NCBI GenBank assembly: GCA_050084985.1
Contig: JBITNC010000002.1
Span: 30,938,001 to 31,002,000, forward strand
DNA from: Nageia nagi
Taxonomy: Eukaryota; Plantae; Pinophyta
Length of the DNA stretch: 64,000 bases
Reading direction: 5' to 3'
The notes beneath the pieces are model-generated. The model saw only the letters and a list, made by a program, of their open reading frames with translations. It was not told the DNA's origin and did no database searches. The position numbers and the translations under genes were made by a program. Below are positions 2,843-50,061 of this stretch, one piece after another. Numbering within the stretch: the stretch's first letter is position 1; each line of letters begins with the position of its first letter.

Positions 2843-3158
2843 TGAGAGAACTATAATGTTCTATATTACTCATAAAAATGAGTTACATATATAGGCTTTG
2901 TGAGCCATTACAAGACAAGCTAAATGGTTGAGATGCAATATTCTCACACCATAACAAATATCACAAATAGCAGACCTACGTGAACTACAAGACAATAAGT
3001 GATGCCTATCCTAACAAATAGGCTAGGTATGGAATATGGTCAACATAGACCAAATATTCCTCACAAGCTAATATTAATACTTTAGGAAATACTCTTAATC
3101 CTAATTAATAAATCCTAATAACTTAGGACTTAGGGATATGTAGGGTATAATTCCAACA
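2843..3158 (-). repeat. 5' LTR of Copia element (~316 bp)
   Basis: TG...CA termini on the minus strand, 2 nt from the PBS. The partner LTR is not in the window. Confidence 0.75.
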
Positions 3159-3228
3159 GAAATATCCCACTGCTTCAATTGAACCTACTAGATGTGTTGA
3201 ACATATAAAAGAGAATGTTAAGGTTAGA

Positions 3229-3967
3229 ATGCTAGAATATGTAGATTCATCAGATGAATATAGAGCAAAAAAATGTATAAGAATAAGAAATAAAGGACAA
3301 ATTCATCGATTACAACTACCAAATGTTGATCCAGTTGAGCTACCAGATGAGAGTGTTGGTGATTTGCATTTAACACCTAATGTTGTACATTTATACAAGT
3401 CTACCTATGACCATAAGGCATACGGTGCATGGCCAATTGGAAAACCTTTTCCAAAAGCTTATGAACAATTCACTTATTATGGTCATTCATATATGATTAA
3501 ACCTTCTAATATACCTAATTTGGGTATTGGTTTGTTTATATTATCAAATGTACAAGTTCATCCATTCACTAAAAAGGACCATTAATGCCATTTTATGGGC
3601 CAATATGTAATGTTATATACTAGAGGATAATAACATCATATTTATGTAGTATGGATAAATATGGTATGTGTGGAAATACAACATCACAAATAAAAGATAC
3701 AAAATGTATGTACATTGATGGTCGACTAAAGATACATGGAAACATTGCAAGATATATGAACAACTCCAAAGGTATAGGCAGTCTAGCAAATTATGATTTT
3801 ATGGAATATGCAAATGATAAATATGAATTTATGCCTATAAAAATGAAAAGTTTATAGGTGTGGATCCTTTTGTAACTCTTAACCCTAGTGATGAGATCTT
3901 AGTGCATTACAACATTGATAAACATATTCTAGCATGTAAGAGATGTATGGATTTAGGAGATCCAAAT
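3229..3967 (+). pseudogene. SET-domain protein exon of CACTA copy A (frameshifted)
   Basis: Joined frames give IKPSNIPNLGIGLF...LMPFYGPI...YIDGRLKIHGNIARYMNNS...ANYDF...LNPSDEILVHYN, i.e. the SET motifs GxGLF, (RF)INxS and (G)xELxxxY. Confidence 0.8.
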
Positions 3968-4292
3968 GTATTTATTAAACCAAGATAAAAGTGTAAAGAG
4001 AAAAGAAATTATAGTAGATATTGAATAATGTTTGTAGTGCTAGGCATGTAGTTATGGCTTTAGACTATCTTATTTGCTATTTTATTGAAGATCCTTAAGG
4101 GATTTTATTTTTTGAAGAACATAATTATTGGAATTATTGATATATTTTACTTAAATTCATGTTATTTGTGTAATTTTTACTTAAACTTATGTACTTTTTA
4201 AACTTATTGACATATACTTATTAGATATTATGAATACTTGTTAAATTCAATTTTTTAACTATATTAATTATTTGTAATAAGTAATTTCATAG

Positions 4293-7200
4293 GCACATCA
4301 TACTACAGTAGATACACAAGATGAGTCAAATACAATATCTTATATGCTAACCTTACATCAAAAAAATATTCATTGGAAAAAAAGGAAGAAACTAAAGAAT
4401 ATATTAAGTAGGGATGAATATGTAGAATTCATTACAAATCCAAATCCAATGGCTCTTATTCAAATCATGAATTCAGATAGTGAAAATGATGAAAGACATT
4501 ATAACACTCATGATCAACAACAAAATGCAATGCATGATTTATTTCAATCAATCTATACAAATGAAGATGATACAAATGTAGGCATGAATGATAATCCTCA
4601 TGCACATGATGATGGAAGAGGAGGTGATTTAGAAAATGACAACATGTATGTTACTGCCAAAATACATTTATACAATGGAGCATTTATTTCCAAGTTGGAA
4701 GAGCTCCTACTTATCATGAATATAAAGGCCAAAAATGGATGGTCATATACAAGTGTCAATGATCTTCTGTAGTATGTATTTATTTTTATAATGTTTTTCA
4801 TTTTTTGTAAATTTATTGAATATTTTTCAAACTTTTTGAAAAATTATTTTCAATTGACAATGTCATACCTTCTTCATGTAGAAAAGTATGAAAATTTTTG
4901 AAGGATGTAGGGGTACCATGTGTTTCATACCATGCTTGTGTTAATGATTACATATTATATAGAGGATGATATGAAAAATTGAGTGTACATCCAAAGTATG
5001 GTGCAAATAGATATCGTCTAGGAACTATAGGAAAAATGTTCCTTTGAAGGTTGTTCACCATCTTCTAATTATCGATAAATTCATTAGAATATATAAGTGT
5101 GATTCATTTGCATAGTATATGGATTGGTATGCAAAAAATAGAAGTGAAGACAATGTATTATGAATTCCTAAAGATTCCAGAGCAATGAAACATATAGAAA
5201 ATATGTGGTTCGATAAATTTTGGGATGAACCTAAAAGTCTCAAGTTGGGTTTAGCAATTGATGGTGCCAATCCACATTCCATACAATCATCTAATTATTC
5301 AATATAGCATATTTTTAGAGTCAATTATAACATACCTCCATGGATGTCCTTTTTTATTTAATTTTAACTCTTTTAGTTCCTAGACCTAATCAAGTGAAAA
5401 ATATGGATATCTACCTTGAACCATTAATTGATGAACTAATGCAATTATGGAATGGAATTCAAAATTTTATTGACATAAGTAGACCCATCCAACAAAGATC
5501 ATTCACATTGTATGGCATACTATGTTGGACTATACATGATTATCCAAGTCTTAGTGTTTATTCAGTACGTATATATAATTTCTATTACATTTACATTTAT
5601 ATTAAAATATTTAATTTCTTAAAATTATATATAGTAATTATTATCTAATAAAAATGTATTATAGGGTTACGTACAGAAGGTTATCATGTTGATTCATGGT
5701 GTGCAAAAAATCTCATAGCAAGATATTCAGAACACTTGCAGAAGATGGAATACCTTGGCCACAAAAAATATTTACCATTAGATCATGAGTTTCAAAATAT
5801 GAAATCATAGTTTAATGGTCAAATTGATCACACAAAAATTCCAAATATGCATCTCCCGAGGATTGGTTGAAAAAGTAACAAGAAAGTGAAGAAATTTTTT
5901 GGATAAAATCCTTTGAGAAAGGTATTGTTGAAGATCTATAAGATGTTATTGTTAAAAAAGATGACTTACCTCAAGGTAAAATTTAATAAAATACTATATC
6001 AAATATTCTTTTTAACATCTCATTAATTCAATTATTTTATCAATTAAATGTTTACATTTGCATATGTTTTTAGATATGAACATATTATCCATATTTTATA
6101 ATATGGAATACTGGAAGGATTTATTAGTGACATATTTATTAGATCATATGCATATTGTTAATAATGTTGCATCTTATTTATACCAGTATACAAAAAGTAA
6201 AGAATTAGATAATATTCAATTGAGATATGACTTAAAGGATACCAAAACAAAATGTACCTTTTGGGTAACAAAATGCAAATGGAACAACAAATGCACCTAT
6301 TCTAACCTCATGGCTTATGACCAAAGATGAAGTGAACATTCTACATAATATTTTTAGAGCCATTAAAATACTAATGGAATATACATCATCTCTAAGAAAA
6401 GCATTCACAATTGATGGAAAAATGACAGGATTGAAGTCTCATGATTATCACAACTTATTGAAGGTATTCTCATATTATATGCATATCCAAAACCTTAAAA
6501 ATATTTATACTTATATATTTTTTATTCATCTATATTTGGATTAATATAAATTTTCTTATAGATTATTTTCCACTTGCAATTCATGGATGTATGACTTTAC
6601 CTACTGATTTAAGATATGCAATTGGTTGACTATCATTATTTATAAGGTATTTCATGCTATTTATGATACTATTTAATGAAAATATATAGTGCATTTATTG
6701 TTATTTTGTAGTTTCCAATATATTTTAAATACATATTATGATATTAATTGTATTTTCATAACTAGGTGGTTGACTTTAAAGGAAATACATGTCAATGAAA
6801 TCCCTAGATGGTGAAGAGAAATTGTGGAAATTGTTTGTAAATTTGAAAAAGAAATGCATGTTGCTTTTATGGATATATAAGTTAATATATTGATCCACCT
6901 AGTATATGATATTGAAATAGTAGGTGTTATAAGTACTAGAAGCATAGTTTTTATGGAAAGATTTTTGAAAGTACTTAAATGATTTGTTAGATAAAATTTA
7001 ATACCAGAAGGATCTATCTGTGAGGGATATATTATTCAACAATCTTTTTTTTATGTAAGTGATTTTCTATCTCAAATTCATGATTTAGCTCCAATGATAT
7101 GGTTACAAGCAAACAAAGACAATTATAAATTAGAAATGGAGGTTTTAGAAACAAATGAGAGATCATATGCTCTTAATAAAGGTACTAAATACATTTTAGA

Positions 7201-8160
7201 TAATAGTAATTTATAATAAGTACTATGTACATGCAATTTTAATTTAATTTAATCAATAATTACTAATAAGTTCATTTTATGTATTCAAAAAAATTATAGA
7301 TTGTGACATATATGAATATATAAACTATTTTATCACGATGAATATGGAGTTTTGTAAAGAATGAATTGAATTGTATGAAAGTAAAATAAATGCAACCTAG
7401 CACAACATATTTTGTTCTATAGTGAACATCCAAGGAGTACACCTATACCTTCATATGTAAGAGATGAAAATTGGCTAAAAGAGTGTCCAAGGTCATGGAT
7501 AAAGCAAGCAATTGAAGAGAAATTAGCTAAAGGTGTAGAAGAAAAAACCTATGAAGATGCTTTAAATATAGCTTATGGATGTAATTATGAGGTAATTATT
7601 CATTAATTCTTATGGACCTAAGTTTTTTTTATAAATAATATATATATAATACTTGTACCAATATAACATTTACATAAAAATATGTGCAAGCATTATCTTT
7701 TCCTGCAATGTGGGCATACGGTTTATGCTTCAAAATTGAAAAGAAAGATAGTAATAGAATGACCTTTGACTATGGAGTGATGGTTGATTTTGATTAAGCA
7801 AGTCATGGAAGTACAAAAGATAAAAACTTGATAGAAGGAAAAATACAATATGTTGGAAAAATTCAAGAAATCATATAATTGAATTTTAGATCATTCAAAT
7901 GTGTAGTATTCAAATGTAAATGGTTTGAAGGATTTGTAAATAGAAGATCCATATTTAATGATATACCTGGTGGTTATTATGCAATCGACTCTACATGATA
8001 TTTACCTCAAGAAAAAGAGCCATATGTTTTACCACAACATTATAGTCAAATATTTTTTGTCCATATTTACTAGATGAAAATATGTTGTTTGTAATTGATT
8101 GTGATCCGAGAGGGAAACATGTTGTACATATTCTTGATGAAAATGGTAACAATTGTGATT
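4293..8160 (+). pseudogene. CACTA TnpD/TNP2 transposase (Transposase_21, DUF4218, DUF4216), intron-containing, decayed
   Basis: GWSYTSVNDLL; HACVNDYILYRG; LGLAIDGANP; NYNIPPWM; MDIYLEPLIDELMQLWNG; WTIHDYP; DHMHI; GLKSHDYH; FMERFLKVLK..PEGSI.EGY; FKCKWF..EPYVLP. Confidence 0.92.
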
Positions 8161-9499
8161 AAAATATTATATGTATATTTGAGTAATTAAACATTATATA
8201 TATTGATATCTTTATTGATTTGAGGTTGACTTGCATATGAATTTGAATTATAGTATTTTTTTGAATATTTTGCAATTTTTAGATTACTTCCAATTAATTA
8301 CTCATTAATATATTACGCATATTACATGTATTTTCATGTTTAAGATGTTCAATCAATTCCATATGTAATAATTTCAAATGTGAAAGTGTATATACATGCT
8401 TGTGGTGGTCAATTTAATATTAGCATACCATGTTAGGGTTCTCTGCTTAGTCTTTCACTTGAGATATCATTATTTTCTTGTGTCAAAATGGGAACTAGGA
8501 AGTAGAGATCATAGGATGGACATGAAATATTCTTCATCAATTCTATGTAACATTAGCATGGTAGACCATACAGTAAAATGTATATTATGAAAATGCATAA
8601 TTCAAAATGTTAAGATTTACTTGATCAAACATCAACTAAAAATTCAACTAATGCATCAATCAAAATGTCAAAAATAACTTGAAAAATACATCAATACATG
8701 TATCTTGTAATGTGCCAATCAAGGCATCAACATACAAATAAAATGTAGTTTTGATACAGATTTGCAATCCCCAATGCTTAAAGAGTCAAAGCATCAAAGA
8801 AATTTTTGTTAACACATTAAATGATGCAAACTAAGTAAAATTCAATAGCAAATTTATTTGTATATTTTTAAATTATGTTATTCTAAATATCATCACTTAT
8901 AAATATTCTTATAAAAATATCAATTCCCAACCTTTCAGAAATGGATCAATGGTGACCTAAAATGGATTGTCGATGGTCCTCTTTTAGGGGAATTTGATAA
9001 TGAAATTTAAATTGCTATTTAAAAAAACTAATAAAAATATATAACAAAATTAAAATCAGCATTCACCTAAGATAACACAATCAAATTTATATTGATTCCT
9101 CCCAATGTGTAAGTACATTCATTTTAACATCTCTTCTTCATTATGGGACCCAAATAGGGATTACAAATTAGTGTGAATATGGAATACATTATCATAATAT
9201 TAAATGGTCCTTCTCCAACTTGCAATCACCTTGAATCAGATCTAAATCTTTAATTATTAAGTTTATGCTTCAACAATACCATAGACGAATCAACACTACC
9301 TCTCAACAACCTGCAATAATCTCGAAATGAATTACCTTCAAAATAGAATGGAAGAAGAAAATATTTTAGCCCCTAAAATTACCCTTGATTTTTCACATTC
9401 CAAGAAAACTACCATAAGAAATGGACCATTGTTAGTCCTCATGTGCTCACAAATGGATGACTAGCGATTCACTTTTTTCACAGTTATCTCACCAAATTT

Positions 9500-12369: not shown

Positions 12370-12650
12370 AACAAGATAGCTTGCATGATCAAGAAGGTCA
12401 ATAATGCATATATAATTATTCATCCTATGAATAATGTAGTAAGAGTCCCTCATGCTATTAAAGTATTTATAGCCCTCATCCATTATTCCTACATGGAAAC
12501 ATGCAAGTAGAATACATACAAAGGTTATGTTGTTAGGGTTGGCTCCCAAGTGCTTGATCAAATGAAAGAGTTTGAGGGCATCCTTGTTGTAGCCATGGAT
12601 TTCATATCCTCCAACCATTGCATTCTATGAAACTATGTTTGCATCATGTC
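12370..12650 (-). pseudogene. PLS-class PPR gene fragment
   Basis: ORF 12325..12618 (MVGGYEIHG..DALKLF..PNNITFVCILLAC.HVG..DEG.KYFNSM..IIDLL); duplicate of ~13230-13510. Confidence 0.85.
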
Positions 12651-12809
12651 TACTAAAGAACTCATAACCACAACATGTGATAGAAATATTCTTTTAAAGA
12701 GTCTTTTATGTATTAAAAAACCTTGTTACAAATTTCCCATTTTGGGGTATTTTTTAAAAAGGTTAGGAAAGGTGATTTTATAATGTTCTAATGCTACTAT
12801 TGTTTGTTG

Positions 12810-13510
12810 CATTCCATGAAACTATGTTTGCATCATGCATCTTAGCAAACAATTCTTACATCAGGTTATTGTACTCTTTCTCATTTTCCACAATTCATAA
12901 GTATTTGTGGGTGTGATCTGTCTCCTACAAGAAAATCATTTACCCTTTTGTGAACTTCAATTCAACTACATCCAAGTGCCTTCTTGATTCCTCAATCTTT
13001 AATAAATGTCCTTACTCCTTCATCATCATCATAGTTTCCCACTTCAACATAAATATTTGAAACAAGGACATAAGATGGAGCATATTTAGTCTCCAACAAA
13101 AATAATATTCTTGCTACAAATCCCACAATTCCTACATTCTTATGTGATCTAAAAGCACTAAGGATAAATACCCATACACACAATTCAAGCTTTTTGGGCA
13201 TATTGACAATAACTTTCATAGCTTCCTCAAGATAACTTGCATGAAAAAGAATTTCAACAATGCATGTATAATTATTCATCCTACAAACAATGCAGTAAGA
13301 GTACCTTATGCTATTAAAGTATTTACAGCCCTCATGTACTATTTCTTCATGGTAGCATGCAAGTAGAAAACATATAAAGATTATGTTTTTAGGGTTGGTT
13401 CCCAAGTGCTTCATCAAATGAAAGAGTTTAAGGGCATACTTATTGTAGCCATGAATTTCATATCCTCCAACCATTGCATTTTATAAAATTGTGTTTGTAT
13501 CATGTCTATT
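12810..13510 (-). pseudogene. PLS-E/E+ class PPR gene fragment
   Basis: ORF 12992..13474 with terminal PPR motifs and an E domain (VW..ILSA.RSHKN..YVLVSNIY), continuing through stops as GIKKALGCS*IEV...FLVGDRSHPQ. Confidence 0.88.
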
Positions 13511-14679
13511 AGGGAATTCATAACCACATGTGATAGAAATACACTTTTAATGAGTCTTTGATGTATTTATCAACCATTTTGCAAATTTTCCAATTTAAAA
13601 TCAATAATTTATTTAATTAAAACAAACATGGTTCCAAGTTCATTCTTTGAATATGTCTCATTATTTTGAATTGCAGGGAATTTGCAGTCATTGATTTGAA
13701 GTATCTTATTAAAAAATCTCATCTCACTATGGTATATGCTAGATACTACACATTTACTTTTTTTATTTTATGGGGGTAGTACAAGTATATGTTGTTGTTT
13801 TGTTGTGATTTGTTGACTTAAATACTAATACTTGTAATGTTAATCATATGCCCTCATAGAAAACACCGTAAATATGAGGAATTTAGGAGCATGCATCAAA
13901 TACATGATCATAGAGAGCTTTACTTAGATGGTGGAGGAGAATGGATTGCTACCAAGAAGATTGATAGGATATAATAATTTTTCTTTATTTTTAAGTGTGC
14001 ATTAATCAATTAAGTTCAACAGGGTGATAAGTAGAGGTTAAATGAGCATAGGAACTGATATTATGAATGTATTGCATCAATTCCTCCTCTACTAAGAAGT
14101 AGGAGGCCAATAGATGGCATATGTAAGCCATCCACATATAATCAAAAGAAATATGAGGCATAAAATAAATATATAAATAAGGTGCTTTAGAGACAATATA
14201 ATAATGAACATCATAGAGTTGTTGAAGGTATCTATTTTCAATATGATGTCCATGGTAAAAATAATTTACCAAAACCAATCATGGATGAACTACAAAAAAG
14301 ATGGAAGAATATAATTCTGAGGATAGAAAAAAAATTATTGGATCATTTAAAATAACAATTCACAAAGGGATATGTTAACTTTATTATAAAGGGGAAGGCA
14401 AGTGATTATATTTCATTTACATTATAATTTATGTTCTTGTATTGTTGTTTTATGTTATCCAACAAGTATGTAGTAATTTCTCATAGGTTGATGCAAATTT
14501 TGCAATATCCATAGATAAAATACTAAGAATTTTTAATCATGTTTTTAAAAAGTGTTGTTATTATACAAATAAATAATATTATTGATTATTAACATCATAT
14601 ATTATCCACATCATGTATAAGATTTGTCAAATGTACAAGGATCTTTACATCTGAATGATTTCGATGGTTAACATTCAAG

Positions 14680-19869: not shown

Positions 19870-20390
19870 AATGTTTGAATACTCATGTGTGAAGATTCCT
19901 CAAAATAGTTTGCATGAATGAGAAGGTCAATAATGCATGTATAATTATTCATTCTAGGAATAATTATTCATTCATGCTATTAAAGTATTTACAATCCTTT
20001 GAATGGAAAAATTACCATTTATAATTATTCATTTTCGAAAAAATTATTTTTCAATGGAAAAAACTATCTTTTAATGTTTGAATACTCATGTTTGAAGCTT
20101 CCTCAAGATAGTCTACAGGAATGATAAGGTCTACAATGCATGCATATATTATTCATTCCAATAATAATGCAATACAATTCATTCATGAAAGTATTTACGA
20201 CCCTCATACACTAGGACTACATGGTTGCATGCAAGTAGAACACATACAAAGTTTATGTTGTTAGGGTTGGTTCCTCAGTGCTTCATCAAATCAAATAGTT
20301 TAGTGGAATCCTTGATGTAGCCATGATTTGCTCATATCCTCTAAGAATTCAAGTTCATGAAATTATAACTATATCATGCATATTACATGG
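19870..20390 (-). pseudogene. PPR fragments (partly duplicated), same family as 12.4-13.5 kb
   Basis: gcatgcaagtagaacacatacaaagtttatgttgttagggttggttcc and catgtataattattcat match the 12.4-13.4 kb PPR pieces. Confidence 0.75.
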
Positions 20391-27731: not shown

Positions 27732-29428
27732 ATTAGGGGTTAGGGTTTAAAGGTTAGGGGTTAAGCAGTAGGGTTAGGTTAGGGTTTGGGGTAAGGGTTA
27801 GGGATTTGGGTTAGGGGTTAGGATAAGGGGTTAAGGGTTAAGGTTAAGGTTTGGGTTTAGGGTATGGGGTTAGGGTTTGGGGTAAAGACCCATGGGTCAA
27901 TCTATGGGTTGGTCCACTTAGTGGTTAGGGTAAGGGTTAAGGTAAGGGGTCAAGGGTTAGGGTTTGGAGTTATGGTTAAGCTTATGGTTACGATTTAAGG
28001 GTTAAGGTTAGGGTTTATATTTGGGTTGAGGTTAGGATTTTAGGTTTGGGGTTAGGATTAGGGTCTAACAGTTAAGGTTTAAGGGTTGGGGGTTATAGTT
28101 AGGTTTTAAGGGTTAAAAGTTTGGGTTATGGGTTAATGTTATGATTAAGGTAAGGTATTAAGCATTAGGGGTTTTAGGTAAGGATTAATGGTTTGGTTTG
28201 GTGGTTAGTGTTCAGGTTAAGGTAAGGAGTTAAGGGCTAGGGTTAAGATTAAGGTTAAGGTTTAGGTTTGGGGTAAGGGGTTAAGGGTTAGGGTTAAGGT
28301 AAGGGGTTAAGGGTTATAGTTAGGGTTTGGGTTATGGTTTGGGTAAGGGTTAGGCATTAAGATAAGGGGTTAGGCACTAAGATAAGGGGTTAAGGATTAG
28401 GGCTAGGGTTTGGGTAAGGGTTAGGGGTTAGGGTAAGGGTTAAATTAAGGTAATGGGCTAAGGATTAGGATTAAGGTTTAGAGTTATGGTTAGGCTTATG
28501 GTTATGATTTAAGGGTTAGGGTTAGGGTTTGGATTAGGGGTTAAGGTTAGCAATTTGGGTTAAAGGGTAGAGGTTAGGCTTATAGGTTTAGGTTAAAGGT
28601 TAGGGTTTGGGCTTAGGGTTCAAGGGTTTTCATTTAAGGGTTAGGGTTTAAGGATTATGGGTTAGAGTTAGGTTTTAAGGGTTAAGGGTTAGGGTAAGGG
28701 GTTAAGGATTAGGGTTAAGGTAAGGGGTTAAGGGTTTAGGGTTAAGATTAAGGTTAGGGTTTGGTATTAGGTTTATGGTTTAGGATAAGGTTTAGGGGTT
28801 AGGTTAAGGGTTAAGGGTTAAGGTTAAGAGAAGGGTTATGGGTTAGGAGTTAAGGTAAGGGGTTAAGGGTTAGGGTTAAGGTAAGTGATGAAGGATTAGC
28901 GTTATAGTAAAGATTAGGATTAAGGTTAAGGTTTGGGGTAAGGTTTAGGGATTAAGATAAGGGGTTAAGGGTTAAGGTTAATGTAGGGATTAAGGGTTAG
29001 GGTTAATGTAGGGATTAAGGGTTAAGATTAGGGTTCGAGGTTATAGTTAGGCTTATGGTTACAATTTAAATATTAAACTTTAGGTTTGGGATAAGGTTTT
29101 GGGTTTGGGTTAGGGGTTTAAGTTAGAGGTTAGTGTTTAGGGTTAAGGTTCAAGGGTTAAGGTTTAAGGGTTGGCAGTTATAGTTAAGGTTTAAGGGTTA
29201 GGGTAAATGGTTAAAGGCTAAGGTTAAGGTAAGGGGTTAAGGGTTAGAGTTAGGCTTTATGATTATGGTTAGGGTTATGATTACAATTTAGGGGTTATGG
29301 TTAGGGTTAATGGTAAGGGTTAAGTGTTTGGGGTTAGGCATTTAGGATTAAGAGTTTGGGTTAAGGGTTTGAATTAGGGGCTAGGGTTAGGGGTTAGGGT
29401 TTATGGGTTAAGGTTTAAGGGTTGGGAT
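27732..29428 (+). repeat. Degenerate interstitial telomere-like array (TTAGGG/TTAAGG/TTTAGGG variants, G-rich on +), ~1.7 kb
   Basis: Continuous ggttagggtt/ggttaaggg variants. Confidence 0.95.
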
Positions 29429-30179
29429 TATAATAGCATTTTTTAATAATTAAAAAATTATAAATATTATAATTTTAATAATACAGTATTTAATAAAAAA
29501 AATTAGAAATTAATAATTAAAAAATTATATAATAAAAATTAAATACTATTAATAATTACAAAATAAATAAATAAAATTAAAAATTAGATAAATTTATAAA
29601 TACTTATGTATAAATAATTTTTTAATTTTAAAAATATTCTAAATAATGAGTAATGAAATTCCTAATTTTCTAAAATTTGATAGTAGGTGAGTTAGTGGCT
29701 TACATCACTATGTCCAAGTGAACTGATGTTTTCTTAGATGAGGAAGACATGCCTTATATTCATCAAAATACGATGGATGTATCTTTAGATGATGATGAGA
29801 CTTTTTATATTTCTCAATTGAGGATAGATGTTTCATTAGATGAGGATGAGATGGAGATGCCACCAAATTGTCACCAAATTATCAAAGGAGAAGTACATAT
29901 GATGTATATGTCATTAATTGACACATAAATTTCATTAGATTGTAGAAATGTAAGATCATTTAAATTTTTACTTTGATGATATTATGTGAAATAGTTAACT
30001 TAATATTATGATTAATATTAAAGTAAGGATCAACATCCCATTGAATAAGGATGGATATTGATGAAGATGATGATCATGAGGTAATTAGCATGAAATTTTG
30101 ATTTTATTTTAAAATTTTATCAAATTAAATTAAAATCATTATATTAAAATAAAATAAAATTCATCATATGAAGAGAGAA

Positions 30180-30892
30180 TAAGATGAAGAGGGATGAACA
30201 TGCAAAAGAACAATACTTCAAAGAGTAGTGGCATTTATCATTATAAATGAAGAGCCAGTTGATCTACCATTAGAGAGTATTGGTGACTATTCTTTGTTAG
30301 ATCATCTATAACATTTATATGATGATACATATGATCATGAGGTATAAGGTGCATGGCCAATCGATAGACCTTTTCAATAAAACTTTTGATAAATTCAGTT
30401 ATTATGGTTATTCATACATGATCAAACCTTCAAAAATTTTTGTGGTATTGGCATGGGTTTATAATATTTATTATGCATGTTTTTCATGGAATAGTACCAC
30501 CAACATTAATGTCATTTTGTGGACCAATTTACAAACAAGGTATTTACAAATAATTATCAAGGTATATGTTCAGTATGTTTAAATATGACCTTTGCAGAAA
30601 TGATCATTCAACAGAAGATTGAGTATAATTTACTTACATTGATGGTCGACCAAAAATACATGAAAACATAACAGGATGCATAAACAACACCAAAGGCACC
30701 ACACACATACCAAATTATGAATTTGTGTAATTTAAAAATGATTAAGAAGATTTTATGTATAAAAGAATGTGTAGTTATGTAGGTGTAGTTCCTATTAGAT
30801 ATCTTTCACCTCATGATGAGTTATGGATCCATTATAATTACACAAGACCTACTCAAAAACATAAGGAACATTTAGAGTTAGGAGATCAAAAT
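30180..30892 (+). pseudogene. SET-domain protein exon of CACTA copy B (frameshifted)
   Basis: YSYMIKPSKI/CGIGMGL...LMSFCGPIY...YIDGRPKIHENITGCINNTKG..PNYEF...YVGVVPIRYLSPHDELWIHYNY; colinear with copy A. Confidence 0.78.
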
Positions 30893-31084
30893 GTATGAAA
30901 TATAGATATATTTACTATTTAAAGATTGTATGAAATATGGATATTATTACTATTTGATGATTGTATTGACATTCTTACTATTTGATATTTATATGGATGT
31001 ATAAAATTGATAGTATAGATGTTTATTTTTTTAACTATTTTAATGGTTAATTTGTACATAAAAACTAATTAATTAATTCTATAA

Positions 31085-34000
31085 GCACATGAATATGAAA
31101 GAATGACTTATACACTATTTCATCAAAAAAATATAAGTAGGAGAAAAAGGAAGTGACTACACAATGTATTAAGAGTTGATGCAATGAACAATTCCTGAAA
31201 GACCCAAATCCAATAGCTCTTGTTCCTATAGTCATGGATTTAGTTACTGATAATGATAAAAGAGAGAATAATCCTCATCAAGAACAAAGTGTAATTAATG
31301 ATTTACTTCGATCAGTCTATCCAAATGCATATGATGATGAAGACATGAATGATACTTATCATACACATGATAATGTAAGAGATGGTGATTATGAAAATAA
31401 TAGTATGTATAGTGCTTCCAAAACTCTTTTATATGAAGGAGCACATTAATCCAAGTTATAGATGGCCCTACTTTTCATTAATTTAAAAGCTATTTATGGA
31501 TGGTCAAATAAAAGTTTCACTGCTCTTATGAAGTATTTAATATTTTTTATTTTCCAATATTTTAATTTCTATCAATTTATATATTTAATTTTTATCATTA
31601 TTTAATAATAGTTTTATTGCTTTGTATGGTATTATAGGTTACTAAAAAAAAGGGTGCTTACAAGAGACAATACCATCCCTCCTTGCAGAAAGGCATGCAA
31701 AATTTTGAAGGATGTAGAGGTAGAGTGTCATTCATACAATGCTCCTATTAATGACTGCATATTCTATAGAGGATCATATAGAAAATTAACTGTATGTTCA
31801 AAATGTGGTGTAAATATACACCATTCAAAAATGATATGGAATAATATTCCTCAAGAGAATGTTTGTAGCTTTCTAATCATTCCTAGGTTTTATAGAATAT
31901 TTTGGTGTAAGTAAATTGTACAATATATGGATTGGCATGTAAAAAATAGAAGTGAATAAGGTGTATTACAAATTCTTGTAGATTGTAAAATAATGAAATA
32001 TATATAAAATATGTGCTCGATAAATTCTAGGATGAACTTAGGAGTGTCATATTGGTTTTAGCAATTGATGGTGTCAATCCATTTTTCATACTATCATCTA
32101 ATTATTCATTGTGACCTAATGTTATAGTCAATTATAACATAGCTCCATGGATGTCCATAAAAAAAGAACATTTAGTATTAACTCTCTTAGTTCCTAGACC
32201 ACATTAGGTGAAAAATATGGATGTTTACATTGAACCATTGATTGATGAATTGATGAAATTGTGGAATGGAATTCAAAGTGTGATTGATACAAGTACACAT
32301 ATCCAACAAAGGTCATTTACATTATGTGGTATCCTATGTTGGACTGTACATGATTATCCAAGCCTTACTATTTTTTCATGTATGTATATATAAAATTGTT
32401 ATATCATAAATATTTGATTTTCTTTTATCATATGATAATGTATTCTCTAATAAAAATTATTGCAAGTCTTCATATAAAAGGGTCCACAACATGCAAAAAA
32501 TCTCACATCAATATATATTTGAAACACTTGCAGAAGATGGAATACCTTGGCAATAGAAAATATTTGTCAATGGAACACCCTTTTCAAAATTTGAAATCAC
32601 AATTTATGGTGAGGTTGACTACACCCCCACTCCCAATTACACATCTCCTATGGATTGGTGGGTAAAGTACCAAGAAAGTGTAGAAAAATATCAAGAAAGT
32701 GTAGAAAATTATCAGGAAAGAGCCTTTTATGAAAGTACTATTGTAAACCTAGATGATGTTATTGTTTGCAAATATGATTTACTCGAAAGTAAAATTTAAC
32801 AAAATATATGAATATATTTATTTATTTGAAAAAATGCATGTTTGTAATATTTAAATTTCATTATTTTATCAATTAAATGATTTATTTTATGCATGTTTTC
32901 AAGCATGAAGAGACTATCAATACGGTATAAAATTCCATACTAGAAGGACTTATTAGTGGAACATTTATTGAATCTTATGCATATTGCAAAGAATGTTGCA
33001 TCTTATTTGTACCAGACCTATCAATATATAATAAGCAAAGAATAAAATAATCCTAGTCTGAGAAATGATTTAAAAGATACCAATACAAAGTGTTCTTTAT
33101 AGAGAACTCATAATTTGCACTTGATTATGACCAAAGAAATGATCATTCTACACAATGTTGTTCAAACCACTAAAACACCAAGTGGATATGGATCATCTTT
33201 AAGAAGAGCATTTACTATTGATGGTAAAATGACAAGATTAAAGTCTCATGATTACCACAAATTCTGAAAGATATTCTCATATTACATGTTTATAGAAATC
33301 TTTAAATTCATATTACTATATATTTTATTCAAAATATAGTGATTAATATCTGTTGTTCAAAACTTTTGATGAATTTATTTATAGAATATTTTTCCACTAG
33401 CAATTTGTAGATGTGTGAGTTTACCTTATGATTTAAGACATGCAACTGGTCGACTATCAATGTTTATAATGTATTATGCCATGTTTATATACTAGTATTA
33501 TTCTATGATGAAAATAACATGTGTTTATTGTTGTGTTCAAAGTTTAGCATACATTTTGACATTTTCATAAATATGTGCTTAACTTCAAAGGAGGTACATA
33601 TGCATGAAATAAAAATGTGAGGTAAAGAAATTGTTGAAATAGTTAGTAAATTTGAAAAAGAAATACATGTTGCTCTTATGGACATACAAGTGCACTTGTT
33701 GATCCATCTAATAGATGATATTGAAATAACAAGCATTATAAATGGTAGAAATATTTTTTATGGAGAGATTTTTGAAAGTGCTAAAAGCATTTGTTAGACA
33801 AAAATCATGACTATAAGGATCTATAGGTGAGGGATACATTGTACACGAATCTAAATTTAATGCAAGTTAATATATTTCTCAAATTCATAATTTTTCCCAA
33901 AAGATGTGTAATACATACGACTTAGACAAATTAGAATAGGAGGTTTTAGAAATAAATGGGATAATATATTCTCTTGTAGGTACGTCTAACAATATTTGAG

Positions 34001-34956
34001 ATTTTAGTAATTTATAATAGTATATATGTACATGCATTTTGAATTTAATTTAATCAATTGTTACTAACGAGTATATATGATGATATTCTAATTTTGCAAA
34101 TTATGATCAATATGAATCTATAAATCAGTTTATCATGATAAAAATGGAATGTTGTAAAGTGTGGATTGAAGTGTACAATAGTAAAAAATGTAATTCCAAG
34201 AGAACATGCCTTGTTTCATAGTGTAAATACAAGGGTTTCTCTACCTTCACATCTAAGAGTGGAATATTGGTCAAAAGAGTGTACAAGGTTATGGATGAAA
34301 CAAGTAATTGAAGAGAAACAAAGAAGAGAGGAAAGGATAGATGAAGATGCATACAGTATAGCTATTGGATGCAATAAAATGGTAATTATTATTTTATTTA
34401 TTTGCATATAAGTTTTTACATTTTTATAAGACTTTCATGGCTAATTAATATAAACATAATGATTGTACCAATAACATTTTTATGTAAATATGTGCAAGCA
34501 TTGTATTTCCCTGCAATGTGGGCATATGATCAACACTTCAAAAATGACACAAATGATGAAAGAAGGACATTTGGTTATGGAGTGATGGTTGAATTTGACA
34601 AAGCAAGTTGTGCAAGTACAAAAGATACAAAATAGATAGAAGGAAAATTACAATATATTGAAAAATTTGAAGAAAGTATTCAATTGGATTATAGATCATT
34701 CCAGTGTGTAGTATTTAAATGTTAATGATTTGAAGCATTTAATATAAAAACAACCTTATACGATGAACCTAGTGGTTATCGTGCCATTGACTCCACATGA
34801 TATTTAGCTAAAGATAAATAGCCTTATATTTTACCACAACATTGTAGTTAAATATTTTTCATTCCAGATGTATTGGATAAGAAATAGTGGTTTGTAATTA
34901 GTTGTGAACTAAGAGGAAAATATATTGTATGTCTTATTGATGAAGATGATAATTAA
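31085..34956 (+). pseudogene. CACTA TnpD/TNP2 transposase, intron-containing, decayed
   Basis: GWSNKSFTALM; NDCIFYRG..CSKCG; GLAIDGVNPF; MDVYIEPLIDELMKLWNG; WTVHDYP; LKSHDYH; MDIQVHLLIHL; FPAMWAY; PYILPQHC. Confidence 0.92.
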
Positions 34957-35183
34957 AGATTGTATTGTTGAACTATAGAAATATGTTTTAATGTTATCTT
35001 ATGACACATTAAATATATCTAACCATCAATATATTTTTATTTTGAATTTAAATGAGTTACTTGAATTTTATGACTGTATGTACCATTATGAAATACCTAC
35101 TACATTTTTTGTGATTACATTTTTTTTAGAGATTACTTTAAATTTTTAAATTTAATGTATTTGAAGTTAATACATTTAAATTT

Positions 35184-35751
35184 AAACCCTAAACCAGTAA
35201 AAACCTTAAACCCTTAAAACCCTAAGGGCCTAAACTCTAAACCCAAAATCCTAATCCCTAAAATCTAAAACCCTAAAATCCTAAAATTTTAAACCCTAAA
35301 TCTCTCAAACCTAAACCCTTAAAACCTTAAACCCTAAATCTCTCAAACCTAAACCCTTAAAACCTTAAACCCTAATCCCTAAACACTTAAATCCTAAAAC
35401 CTTAAACCATAAACCTTAAAGCTTAAACCCCTAAAAGATAAAACTCTAAGCCCTTAAAGCCCTAAACCCTAGAACCCTAAACCTTAATAAACCCTAAAAC
35501 CTTAGAACCCTAAACCCTAATAAACCCTAAGTCCCTATAACCTTAAACACTAGCAAACCTTAAACCCTAAATCCCTAAAACCTTAAACCCCTAAAACCCT
35601 AAACCCTAAATCCTAAAACCTTAAACCCCTAAAACCCCCAAACCTTACAACCCTAAACCCTTAAAACCCTAAAACCCTAAAACCCTAAACCCTACAACCT
35701 TAAACCCTTAAAACCCTAAACCCCTAAACTCTTAAAAACCTAAACCCCAAA
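35184..35751 (-). repeat. Degenerate telomere-like array (CCCTAAA variants on +), ~570 bp
   Basis: aaaccctaaa/aaaccttaaa variants, including a 38-bp tandem duplication at ~35291-35366. Confidence 0.95.
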
Positions 35752-36404: not shown

Positions 36405-37243
36405 ATAAGTCTCCATTGTTGATACGACATTTAGCATCAACTATGGCATCAGTATACAAATCAAAATTTAAAAACAATTACACAACATTTTGACACTTAC
36501 ACTGATGCAAAATATAATTAATTTAATAGTGAATAAACACATTTTTTTCTTAAAACAAAATATACCTAAATAGGGAAACGAAAAGGTCATCACATGAAAG
36601 TCAATAATACTCACATAGCAAGAAAGAAAAAAGCAAGGGCTAAATGATGGCCAATAATATTTGCATAGCAAGAAAAAGTGAAAAGCTAAGTAAAATTAAC
36701 ATGGTTTAAGAAAAGTTAATATTTAAGAGTGAGTCTACAAACAACAATTTTTCAAAGAGAGCTACATACATGCTCTAAAGAGTACCTTTGATTAAGATAT
36801 CACATGGTCGTGTTAACAATTATGATAATATTTCCACACCAAATCAATAGCATTATAACTCAATAAATATGTTAGGTTTCTTAAAATAACTTTCAACTCC
36901 AAGGCACTAAATTTAGTAGGCTTTAGGACAATGAAATAAAATGAAGACAAACACACCAAGGCAAGTCTCCCATAAATGAAATAGATGAGCAATACTTGAA
37001 AAAAATGATTACATGTAAGGCTTGCACTGGCATTTCCACTTCAACATAATCAAAGAAAACATAAAATTTAACAAATTCAAAATAAGCTAATAACTTCAAG
37101 TAAAGAGATGCTAAAGCAAAATAATTGATACTAAAACATTTGGGAACTCTAGAAGAGAACCTCAAAGAAAATCACTATGAAAGTGGAAGAAAGGGTAGAA
37201 GGAAATCTACACCACTAATGGTATATGAGTCAAATTGAACAGA

Positions 37244-38891
37244 TGTATATACATACATAGTCCAACAGCCTAGCAACTTCTCAGTGCATATTATCCTTAC
37301 TTATCTATAGGATGAGTGTTTCAGCAAGTTTTTGAATAGTTTTGATGGGAAAATATACTACGTATAGTATTTTTTGGAGTATAAGAGAGAGTCATGTTAG
37401 CAAAATAAAGATTCTTCTAAAATCGAACCTCAGAAGTAATGATGTTAGTAGTTAGTGTTAAAATTTCTACAATGGCTAAGTGTTCTGAGGCATAAAAGAG
37501 AGTGATGCCAGCAAAATAGAGATTCTTCTGAAATCGAACCTTGGGAGTAATGATGTCAACAATTAGTGTTAAAAGTTCCATGATGGCTAAATGTTTCGAT
37601 GCATAAAATAGAGTGTATGTTAGCAGAATAGATATTCTTCTAAAATCAAACCTTAGGAGTAATGACATCAATAGGTAGTGTTAAAAGTTTCACACCAACC
37701 AAGTGTTCTAAGCCATAAAAGAAGTGATGTCAATAGAGTAGAGGCTCTTCTAAAATTGGACCTCAAGAGTAGTGACATTAGCAGGTAGTGTTAAAAGTTT
37801 TGCGATGGCTAAATTAGCTAATTTTAGAGCACAAAAGAATGTAACATCAGCAAAATAGAGTGAATCCCATTTTAGCCAAAAGAATGGGTCCGAAGAAGGA
37901 TGATGTCACAAATAAGATCAAAATCTTTTGAATTTATTTATTTCATCTCACAAAGGCACAAAAGGAGGTGACATTTCAAATTAGATGGTTCAAAAATTGA
38001 ATATGTTAGATGTAACAAATAGGATCTCCACCCAAGCAAAACTTCACTAAAGAACTCTAAAGCATGTGCCAAAGATCAAGAAGGCTCCAGAATAACCACT
38101 AGAAAATGAAGAAACTTTGAAATCACCATAGTTAGTCAAAGAATCTTTCATAATTGTAATACAAGTTCAAATAACACCCAGGAAGCATGTCCATCATGGT
38201 TTAAAGGTCATTATAGTTTAGACTTTTTAATTTTAGGAATAAAATGACATGTGGTAGAATAGTTAGCTATTTATTAAAAGAAGGCCAAAATATTTGGGTC
38301 ATTTTGTAACTGTTTTGTTTCAATCTTTTTGCAACCTCTCTAGTTTAGTATAAATTAGTGGAAGGCAAGGAAAAGGGGTTGGAATCCCTAGTATTACCCC
38401 TTGTATTTGTTTTTGAATACCTATCGTTCTATTAGTTATACAATGCCATCTTGACCTTTCTTGTCCAACGCTTAGTGTTATTATTTTAATCTAGTTATAT
38501 TGTGGCAAGTAATGGATATTTCTTAAATAATAACAAGTTGTTGGTATAATTGTGTCTACTTATATGGAAGAGTTAAGCTGAAGAATAATTTAGAGAATGA
38601 AAGCTTACACTGTGGTTGTTACACTAGATTCTTGCCAAGGTTTCACACTATGTGAAAGCCTATGCTGAACTGTGATTCGCCCCTTTTGCTTTACTCTTAT
38701 TTCCTATCTCTTTTGTTTCATTTCTTGCACTCAATCCTCTTTCATTTCTTTTTTGTTATTTTCTCTTTTCATCTACCTAAATAGATAAGGAACCAATCTA
38801 CTTCAGATATCAGGTTACTATGTTAGCTTGTTCATGATATATTATGATTGTATTGCTCATGGGTGCAGCTATTACACAATTTTCATCAATA
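37244..38891 (+). repeat. 5' LTR
   Basis: Starts TGTATATACATACATAGTCCAAC, ends catcaa(t)a; alignable along its length to 48392-50061. Confidence 0.92.
37382..37860 (+). repeat. ~111-bp tandem repeat (4 copies plus a partial) inside the 5' LTR
   Basis: Unit aaaagagagtgatg.cagca.aatagagattcttctaaaatcgaacc...tagtgttaaaagtt..atggctaagtgttc; same array at ~48530-49005. Confidence 0.9.
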
Positions 38892-48312: not shown

Positions 48313-48391
48313 AAGCTTGGTCTCTCTCCTTTTTTACTAAGTTTTGCGTTGGGTCCAAAATGTCTTATATGAAAAGCAAATGTCACCAAAA

Positions 48392-50061
48392 TGTATATAC
48401 ATACATAGTCCAACACCCTAGCAGCTTCTCAACGCGTATTGTCCTTACTTATCTATAAGATGGGTGTTTCAGCAAGCTTCCGAAGAGTTTTGATGGGAAA
48501 ATATACTAAGTATAGTATTTTTCGAAGTATAAAAGAGTGATGTCAGTAGAATAGAGATTCTTATAAAATTGAACATCGAGAGTAATGACGTCAACAAGTA
48601 GTGTTAAAAGTTCCACGACGGCTAAGTGTTCCAAGGCATAAAAGAGAGTGATGTCAGTAGAATAGAGATTCTTCTAAAATCGAACCCCGAGAGTAATCAC
48701 ATTAGCAGGTAGTGTTAAAAGTTCTACGATGGCTAAGTGTTCCGAGGCATAAAAGAGAGTGATGTCAGCAGAATAAAGATTCTTCTAAAATTGGACCCCA
48801 TAAGTAATGACATCAGCAGGTAGTGTTAAAAGTTTCGCGGTGGTCAAGTGTTCTAAGGCATAAAAGAAGTGATGTCAGCAGAGTAGAGGCTCTTCTAAAA
48901 TTGGACCCCAAGAGTAGTGACATCAGCAGGTAGTGTTAAAAGTTTCGTGATGGCTAAGTCAGCTGATTCTGAAGCACGAAAGAATTTAACATCAGCAAAA
49001 TAGAGCGAAGCCCATTTTAGCCAAAAGAATGGGTCCAAAGAAGGATGGCATCATGAGTACGACTGAAATCTCTCGAAGTTATTTGTTTCATCTCACAAAG
49101 GCATAAAAGGAGGTGACATTTCAAATCAGATGGTCTGAAAATCGATGATGTCAAATGTAACAAATAGGATCTCCACCCAAGTAAAACTTCACCAAAGAAC
49201 TCTGAAACATGTGCCAAAGATCAAGAAGGCTCCAAAACAACCACTAGAAAATGAAGAAACTTCGAAATCACCATAGTCAGTAAGAGAATCTTTCATAATT
49301 GTAATACAAGTTCAAATAACACTCGAGAAGCATGTCCATCATAGTTTAAAGGCCATTATAGTTTAGACTTTTTAGTTTTAGGAATAAAATGACATGTGGT
49401 AGAATAGTTAGCTATTTATTAAAAGAAGGCCAGAATCTTTGGGTCATTTTGTAACTGTTTTGTTTCAATATTTCTTCAACCTCTCTAGTCTAGTTTAAAT
49501 TTAGTGGAAGACAAGGAAAAGACCTATTGTTCTATTAGTTATACAATGCCATCTTGACCCTAGTATTGCCCCTTGTATTTGTTTTTAAAGACCTATTGTT
49601 CTATCAATTATACAATGCCATCTTGACCTTTCTTGTCCAACGCTTGGTGTTATTGTTTTTAATCTGGTTATATTGTGACAAGTAATAGATATTTCCTAAA
49701 TAATAATAAGTTGTTAGTATAACTATGCTTATATGGAAGAGTTAAGCTAAAGAATAATTTAGAGAATGAAAGCTTACAATGTGGCTGTTACACTATATTC
49801 TTACCAAGGTTTCACACTATATGAAAACCTACATTGAACTAGTGATCCGCCCTTTTTGCTTTACTCTTGCTCCCTATCTCTTTTGTTTCATTTCTTGCAC
49901 TCAATCCTTTTTCATTTCTTTTTTGTTATTTGTTCTTTTCATCCCCCCTAATAAATAAGGAACCTGCCTACTCCAAAGATCAAGTTACTGTGTTAGCCTG
50001 TTCATGATATACTTTGATTTTATTGCTCATGGGTGCAACTATTATACAATTTCCATCAACA
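48392..50061 (+). repeat. 3' LTR
   Basis: TGTATATAC...CATCAACA; matches the 5' LTR. Confidence 0.92.

Follow-up and report, generated by a model that had tools for sequence, protein, structure and literature searches.

A SET-domain exon upstream of the TnpD transposase in a high-copy CACTA/EnSpm family of Nageia nagi, and its possible splicing into a fusion protein

Two decayed copies of a high-copy element family

Here we describe a CACTA/EnSpm transposon family that is present in two copies, A and B, in a stretch of 64,000 nucleotides (nt) of Nageia nagi DNA (GenBank assembly GCA_050084985.1, contig JBITNC010000002.1, positions 30,938,001 to 31,002,000, forward strand; 67% A+T), referred to below as the window. 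In this family an exon for a predicted SET domain precedes the exons for a TnpD transposase, and in active ancestors the two may have been joined by splicing into one protein. BLAST places copy A at 3321-3971 plus 4339-8149 and copy B at 30245-30896 plus 31107-34952, with 68-71% identity between them. The match stops at 3971/30896 and restarts at 4339/31107, so that an unalignable gap lies precisely between both blocks.

Both copies are read on the + strand. Copy A consists of the 3′ two-thirds of the SET exon (exon 2; 3136-3967), whose translation ends in ..LGDPN; a putative phase-0 intron of 325 nt (3968-4292, GT at 3968-3969 and AG at 4291-4292); exon 3, the first TnpD-coding exon, with 159 open codons (4293-4771); and the remaining introns and exons of a decayed TnpD gene (4772-8207), which hold the Transposase_21 match and are colinear with a metagenome copy, L003, as far as 8207. 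Copy B is bracketed by inverted subterminal arrays of telomere-like repeats, one at 27733-29430 on the + strand (TTAGGG/TTTAGGG variants) and the other, inverted relative to it, at 35172-35751 on the − strand. Between these lie a remnant of exon 1 (29750-30080), a decayed SET exon (30245-30892; about 68% identical to copy A and ending in ..LGDQN), the 192-nt counterpart of the putative intron (30893-31084) and the decayed TnpD exons (31085-34952; 71% identical to copy A).

Further copies were taken from eight metagenome loci. Over the region compared, L003 is the same as L004 and L006 the same as L007, leaving six independent copies, which together with copies A and B make up a multi-copy alignment of eight. 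The metagenome copies share 76-89% identity with copy A and run colinear with it from 3158 to 8207, right across the gap. Moreover, three runs, each from a different organism, yielded short contigs by the thousand that match window positions 3000-8300 at 80-99% identity, and the same stretch is contained in air metagenomes. Given so many contigs in several organisms, the family must be very high-copy and common to several related plants, which are probably wind-pollinated.

Every copy examined carries stops and frameshifts. Copies A and B have stops and 1-nt indels in both SET and TnpD, and the SET part of copy A, interrupted by stops at 3583 and 3855, is spread over three frames. Copy A is also truncated at its 5′ end, at about 3136; there is no family homology upstream, and exon 1 and some 330 nt of exon 2 are missing. 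The ratio of nonsynonymous to synonymous substitution (Ka/Ks) between subfamily consensuses is about 1 everywhere. As this includes the certain coding sequence of TnpD, selection tests are blind here. Both window copies are dead.

The SET exon, the TnpD gene and exon 1

An earlier reading of this DNA, made from the sequence alone (the sequence-only reading), had recognised a SET domain and a TnpD transposase, and both identifications held. For the former, we searched 1.84 billion representative proteins by phmmer with P0001, a database protein of 154 amino acids (aa) that is 73% identical to copy A and reads through one of its frame breaks, and found 53 relatives of the SET open reading frame (ORF). 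The Pfam SET family (PF00856) was matched by 13 of the 26 relatives scanned (best E 6.5e-09), P0003 scoring 28.2 bits against a cut-off of 22.4; the SET pieces of the window and P0001 themselves gave no Pfam SET match. A profile of the relatives matches SET domains in the PDB, namely those of LegAS4 (3e-07) and MLL1 (5e-04). Likewise, the AlphaFold2 model of P0003 (predicted local distance difference test score 77, above 90 in the SET part) matches MLL1, ATXR5, SET7/9 and DIM-5 with probability 1.00 and template modelling scores up to 0.73; the fold is thus that of a relative, P0003, and not of a window copy. Motifs of the family are G.GLF, YIDG..HGNIA.YINSS/NNS (His replaced) and DEIL.HY. Since relatives match in Pfam, by PDB profile and in predicted fold, the identity of exon 2 as SET, with a predicted lysine methyltransferase-like product, holds through transitive homology. 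One distant relative of the SET ORF is a Ginkgo gene model, Gb_21150.

The downstream gene is, by its predicted domains, a canonical CACTA/EnSpm TnpD. Transposase_21 (PF02992) is matched at window positions 5340-5645 (E 1.6e-14), and on colinear pieces of L003 PF02992, PF13960 (DUF4218) and PF13952 (DUF4216) follow one another in order, the last below cut-off. The first TnpD-coding exon is open from 4293 for 159 codons, in frame with an ATG at 4344, and ends in KNGWSYTSVNDLL; it has an S/T/N-rich start, a KKRKK stretch and a GWS..S..LL motif at its end. It is closed by a phase-2 donor, TA^GTATGT (splice junctions are marked by a caret; GT at 4772), that is kept in L003, L006 and copy B. Neither a search for homologous proteins with 4293-4769 nor a PDB sequence search with exon 3 gave a match. 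No Transpos_assoc domain was seen on TnpD, and an Rfam scan of the window found no match.

The other copies reach about 800 nt further in the 5′ direction than copy A, up to the telomere-like arrays, and there they contain an additional exon. This exon 1 (L006 8811-9206, L004 99-452) stays open for more than 100 codons, includes Met codons and encodes acidic repeats in tandem (DDDPIPPLIHERR.NISS..); it has no Pfam match. At its end lies a canonical phase-0 donor, GAG^GTAATT, retained by copy B between 30080 and 30081, where the remnant ends in ..DEDDDHE and GAG is followed by GTAATTAG (GT at 30081-30082). About 90 nt past this donor, TATTAG^GCC opens the SET exon, again in phase 0. In its 5′ half exon 2 is rich in Cys (..CGCSRCKGW..). 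Neither Pfam nor the PDB sequence search gave a match for this half, and the ESM Atlas returned nothing usable for it or for P0001. With putative phase-0 sites at both ends, the SET exon is symmetric (0-0). It is probable that the SET exon and the TnpD exons were expressed as one spliced unit.

The subterminal repeats of the family are long, degenerate, inverted telomere-like arrays, which are also found upstream of the gene in L006/L007 (L006, about 5540-8850). Between the arrays only the SET and TnpD unit was seen, and no TnpA-like second gene.

The possible joint between the SET and TnpD exons

Splicing between SET and TnpD would need an acceptor at 4293 and a donor at 3968, and the two sites differ in how well they are supported. 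In copy A the acceptor reads TTTCATAG^GCACAT, with TAG at 4290-4292 and the exon starting at 4293, whilst copy B has CTATAA^GCACAT with the exon start at 31085 and AA (31083-31084) in place of AG. Across the alignment GCACAT is preceded by TAG in copy A, by CAA in L005 and L002, by AAG in L008, by CAG in L006/L007 and L003/L004 and by TAA in copy B; the loose-end consensus of run X10 also has TAA. C>T or G>A changes in CAG would yield all of these triplets except the AAG of L008, which makes CAG the probable ancestral state; decay of this kind occurs throughout the copies (CGA to TGA or CAA, ACG to ATG or ACA). The ancestral acceptor was probably TTTTRCAG^GCACATC, a good site with a context close to that of TATAG^G and TTGTAG^G, which are sure acceptors of TnpD. 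We also considered the AG as the mere tail of a TAG stop bounding the ORF, and rejected this because two subfamilies have CAG.

The spacer upstream of this acceptor has stops in all frames and, in the multi-copy alignment, indels of 16, 56 and 14 nt, none a multiple of 3. Between subfamily consensuses it is 87.5% identical with 71 gap columns, compared with 91-92% and almost no gaps for the exons, and the read depth of the family is lowest here. These features support a spacer that behaves as non-coding.

Exon 3 has no shared start codon near its 5′ end. The ATG at 4344 occurs only in copy A and L005; the site is ACG in L006/L007 and ACA or ACT elsewhere. Because of that ACG the ATG is a derived product of CpG decay, and we rejected it as the start of TnpD. 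The in-frame ATGs at 4335, 4350, 4368, 4431 and 4434 are each found in only one or two copies and that at 4449 in four of six; the earliest common to all is at 4467, 58 codons in. The frame is nevertheless open from 4293 in both copy A and L008, and the KKRKK stretch is shared with copy B; the chance of 52 open codons at the given base composition is about 1.5%. Furthermore, all eight copies share an out-of-frame ATG in strong context (4321-4323; CAAGATGAG); it opens an ORF of only 5-9 codons and would be awkward in a 5′ leader. An open frame without a conserved ATG appears to fit an internal exon better than a first exon. Taken together, the ancestral CAG acceptor, the want of a shared ATG for 58 codons, the spacer indels and the presence of a phase-0 exon upstream make a splice into 4293 likely.

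The donor is a different case. In copy A, ..LGDPN is followed by GT at 3968-3969, and read-through would add VFIKPR before a TAA at 3986-3988; in copy B, ..LGDQN^GTATGA (GT at 30893-30894) meets a TGA at 30896, one codon after the GT. The phase-0 GT (AAT^GTATTT) is kept in seven of the eight DNA copies. A 33-nt deletion in L003/L004 (aligned to window 3954-3986) removes the putative donor together with the tail of the SET ORF, and the database ORF P0043 has Ile instead of Val at the donor position. As its flanks are equally conserved, the GT does not stand out. The codon at 3986 is CAA in L005 and AAA in L001 and is not alignable in copy B; ancestrally it could have been a stop or CGA.

From these parts we propose that the whole coding capacity of the element was one transcription unit between the inverted telomere-like subterminal arrays. 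Exon 1 would supply the Met and the acidic repeats and end at its phase-0 donor. Exon 2, with the Cys-rich stretch and the SET domain, would be in phase 0 at both ends. Next would come the TnpD exons, of which the first, at 4293 in copy A, would begin at the ancestral CAG^G acceptor and lack its own start codon. Among the transcripts of active ancestors, some would have had the weak donor AAT^GTATTT joined to 4293 and would have encoded a SET-linker-TnpD fusion; retention of the intron would have given a SET-only protein ending at the stop 6 codons later. Taken as a whole, we tentatively regard this as the best explanation, as one that is possible rather than probable. We infer the use of the 3968 donor and, with it, the existence of the fusion; that this donor had 4293 as its partner is again a proposition we hold tentatively, at less than even confidence.

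A number of observations weigh against this joint. The donor is weak (T at −1 and no G at +5) beside the sure donors of the same gene, GAG^GTAATT, AA^GTATGT and CAG^GTATGT. The stop 6 codons past it is TAA in copy A, L008 and L002 and TGA in L006/L007 and L003/L004, and P0043, P0078 and P0080 share with copy A a stop after VFIKPG/R. A phase-0 GT within the last 7 or so codons is expected by chance in about 30% of cases, and the first 66 nt after the GT (3968-4033) are conserved like exons, at 92% between subfamilies. Moreover, exon 1 joined directly to exon 3, with SET skipped, is in frame just as exons 1, 2 and 3 in succession are. Among proteins, the full-length SET relatives that were aligned have only a few residues beyond the SET motif, all 53 relatives are at most 415 aa long and not one of them carries a transposase, so that a search for SET and Transposase_21 on one chain, which the sequence-only reading had suggested, came back empty from the 1.84 billion representatives. 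Transposable-element genes are usually masked before annotation, and the absence of a fusion protein from databases is for this reason weak evidence. As for transcripts, no run recorded as RNA contains the locus. The joint from 3967 to 4293 (..GATCCAAAT to GCACATC) is absent among the joints listed for three runs of unknown kind and one guessed to be RNA; these four runs gave only short DNA-like contigs.

The sequence-only reading had based its spliced SET-TnpD protein on the frame and on a break in similarity between the copies that coincided with both sites. Its strings and coordinates (donors at 3968 and 30893, exon starts at 4293 and 31085) are all correct. Similarity between A and B does drop at the donor, ending 4 nt past the GT, but it resumes 46 nt (A) and 22 nt (B) downstream of the proposed acceptor, which is itself marked in this comparison only by a short island, TAATTAATT..YAYAR-GCACAT. 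The in-frame phase 0 is likewise real in both copies; however, 8 of the 15 GT/AG pairs around both ORF ends in copy A are frame-compatible and stop-free, and we dropped frame compatibility as evidence of fusion. Of the proposed protein, therefore, the exon start at 4293 has fared well, with its CAG acceptor, non-coding spacer and lack of a conserved ATG, whereas the donor at 3968 has not, being weak, followed by a stop 6 codons on and faced with exon 1 as an alternative.

That alternative is the strongest competitor. Here a shared exon 1 would be spliced, in the manner of En/Spm, either to a terminal SET exon with its stop at 3986 and polyadenylation in the spacer, or to 4293, which would yield a TnpD led by nothing but the acidic part from exon 1, and SET and transposase would never be on one chain. 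The donor of exon 1 is strong and has the phase of the 4293 acceptor, an ATTAAA directly follows the stop at 3986, and the early stop in most copies, the exon-like conservation of 3968-4033 and the stand-alone nature of SET relatives elsewhere would all be accounted for. In En/Spm, TnpA and TnpD arise from one promoter by alternative splicing. On the other hand, this arrangement leaves the kept phase-0 GT and the break in similarity at that GT as coincidences, and would give a TnpD with no recognisable N-terminal DNA-binding module. We consider it a credible but doubtful alternative to the SET-linker-TnpD fusion.

Two separate genes are unlikely. SET would have its own stop, the TnpD promoter would lie in the 325-nt spacer with a start at ATG 4449 or 4467, and the GT and AG would be there by chance. 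Such in-frame GT..AG pairs are indeed common, a stop does follow SET, and copy A has AT-rich TATA-like strings about 28 nt upstream of 4293; however, the TATA-like string is not kept in L003/L004 or L006/L007, more than 50 open codons, including the KKRKK conserved in A and B, precede the first shared ATG, and both the strong conserved ATG at 4321 and the ancestral CAG^G acceptor would go unexplained. Lastly, it is very improbable that SET is a captured host-gene fragment of the Pack-CACTA kind, never functional for the element and with splice-like sites left over from the host, as the distant Ginkgo relative and Ka/Ks of about 1 might suggest, given that the SET exon is at the same place in subfamilies only 68% identical and in thousands of contigs from several organisms, that a Met-bearing exon of the element's own precedes it, and that Ka/Ks is just as high, hence uninformative, for certain TnpD coding sequence.

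Other repeats are present in the window. The segments 37243-38889 and 48391-50059 are 86% identical, each with a 111-bp tandem repeat of about 3.8 units, and are probably another repeated element. A further repeat, dispersed and about 370 bp long, has three copies with 75-85% identity (12372-12743, 13228-13596 and 20104-20366).

Comparison with known systems

The nearest point of reference for this family is En/Spm of maize with its tnpA and tnpD. Both belong to the same superfamily (Transposase_21/DUF4218/DUF4216) and have subterminal repeat arrays, and in both there is probably one promoter, with splicing, putative in the present case, needed to reach the transposase ORF. Unlike En/Spm, the family described here has a SET-domain exon as the upstream partner, no TnpA-like gene that we could find, telomere-like subterminal repeats and no detected Transpos_assoc domain. 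The P element offers an analogy for the proposed switch, in that, with a weak splice site and a stop just inside the intron, intron retention would leave a short protein and splicing would produce the full one. Its transposase is unrelated, and the family here is known from sequence alone.

Even without a fusion the family is unusual, with no TnpA-like gene, telomere-like subterminal arrays and a SET exon that shares a putative transcription unit with the transposase. Chromatin-modifying accessory genes on transposons are rare, and bear on how elements escape or steer silencing by the host. SET genes carried by transposons are already known. HarbingerS is a DNA transposon with a SET accessory gene (Kojima and Jurka 2014, cited in PMC12730594). 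In the red alga Bostrychia, the accessory gene PAG2 of Plavaka has SET and also a DNA methylase domain (bioRxiv 10.1101/2025.02.11.637652). Here, too, SET coding sequence lies beside a transposase, and Plavaka falls within the EnSpm/CACTA group. The SET genes of those elements are described as separate accessory genes, whereas the present family is a land-plant-type CACTA with DUF4218/DUF4216 whose SET exon shares a putative transcription unit and frame with the transposase exons. Our literature search found no paper on a land-plant CACTA element with SET.

The sequence-only reading had likened the arrangement to SETMAR of primates, in which SET is joined to an Hsmar1 mariner transposase, and the comparison stands as far as a possible architecture is concerned: in both, SET is upstream of the transposase, with a possible in-frame splice between them. 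It does not extend to the kind of gene. SETMAR is a single-copy, domesticated host gene that arose by exonisation of an inserted mariner, whereas in the present case SET and transposase both belong to a mobile, high-copy CACTA family of which only decaying copies were seen, and the fusion is a putative one. Since those copies are dead, the family is valuable for evolutionary and comparative questions, not for its function in this genome. It is conceivable, if doubtful, that the transposase of an autonomous plant CACTA family was expressed as a SET fusion, a mobile counterpart of SETMAR that would carry a lysine methyltransferase domain to the element's own telomere-like ends or to the sites of insertion, while the retained intron would provide a SET-only regulator. 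If SET and TnpD indeed shared one chain, the family would provide the first mobile SET-transposase fusion, and the architecture of SETMAR could then arise within an element and not only by domestication.

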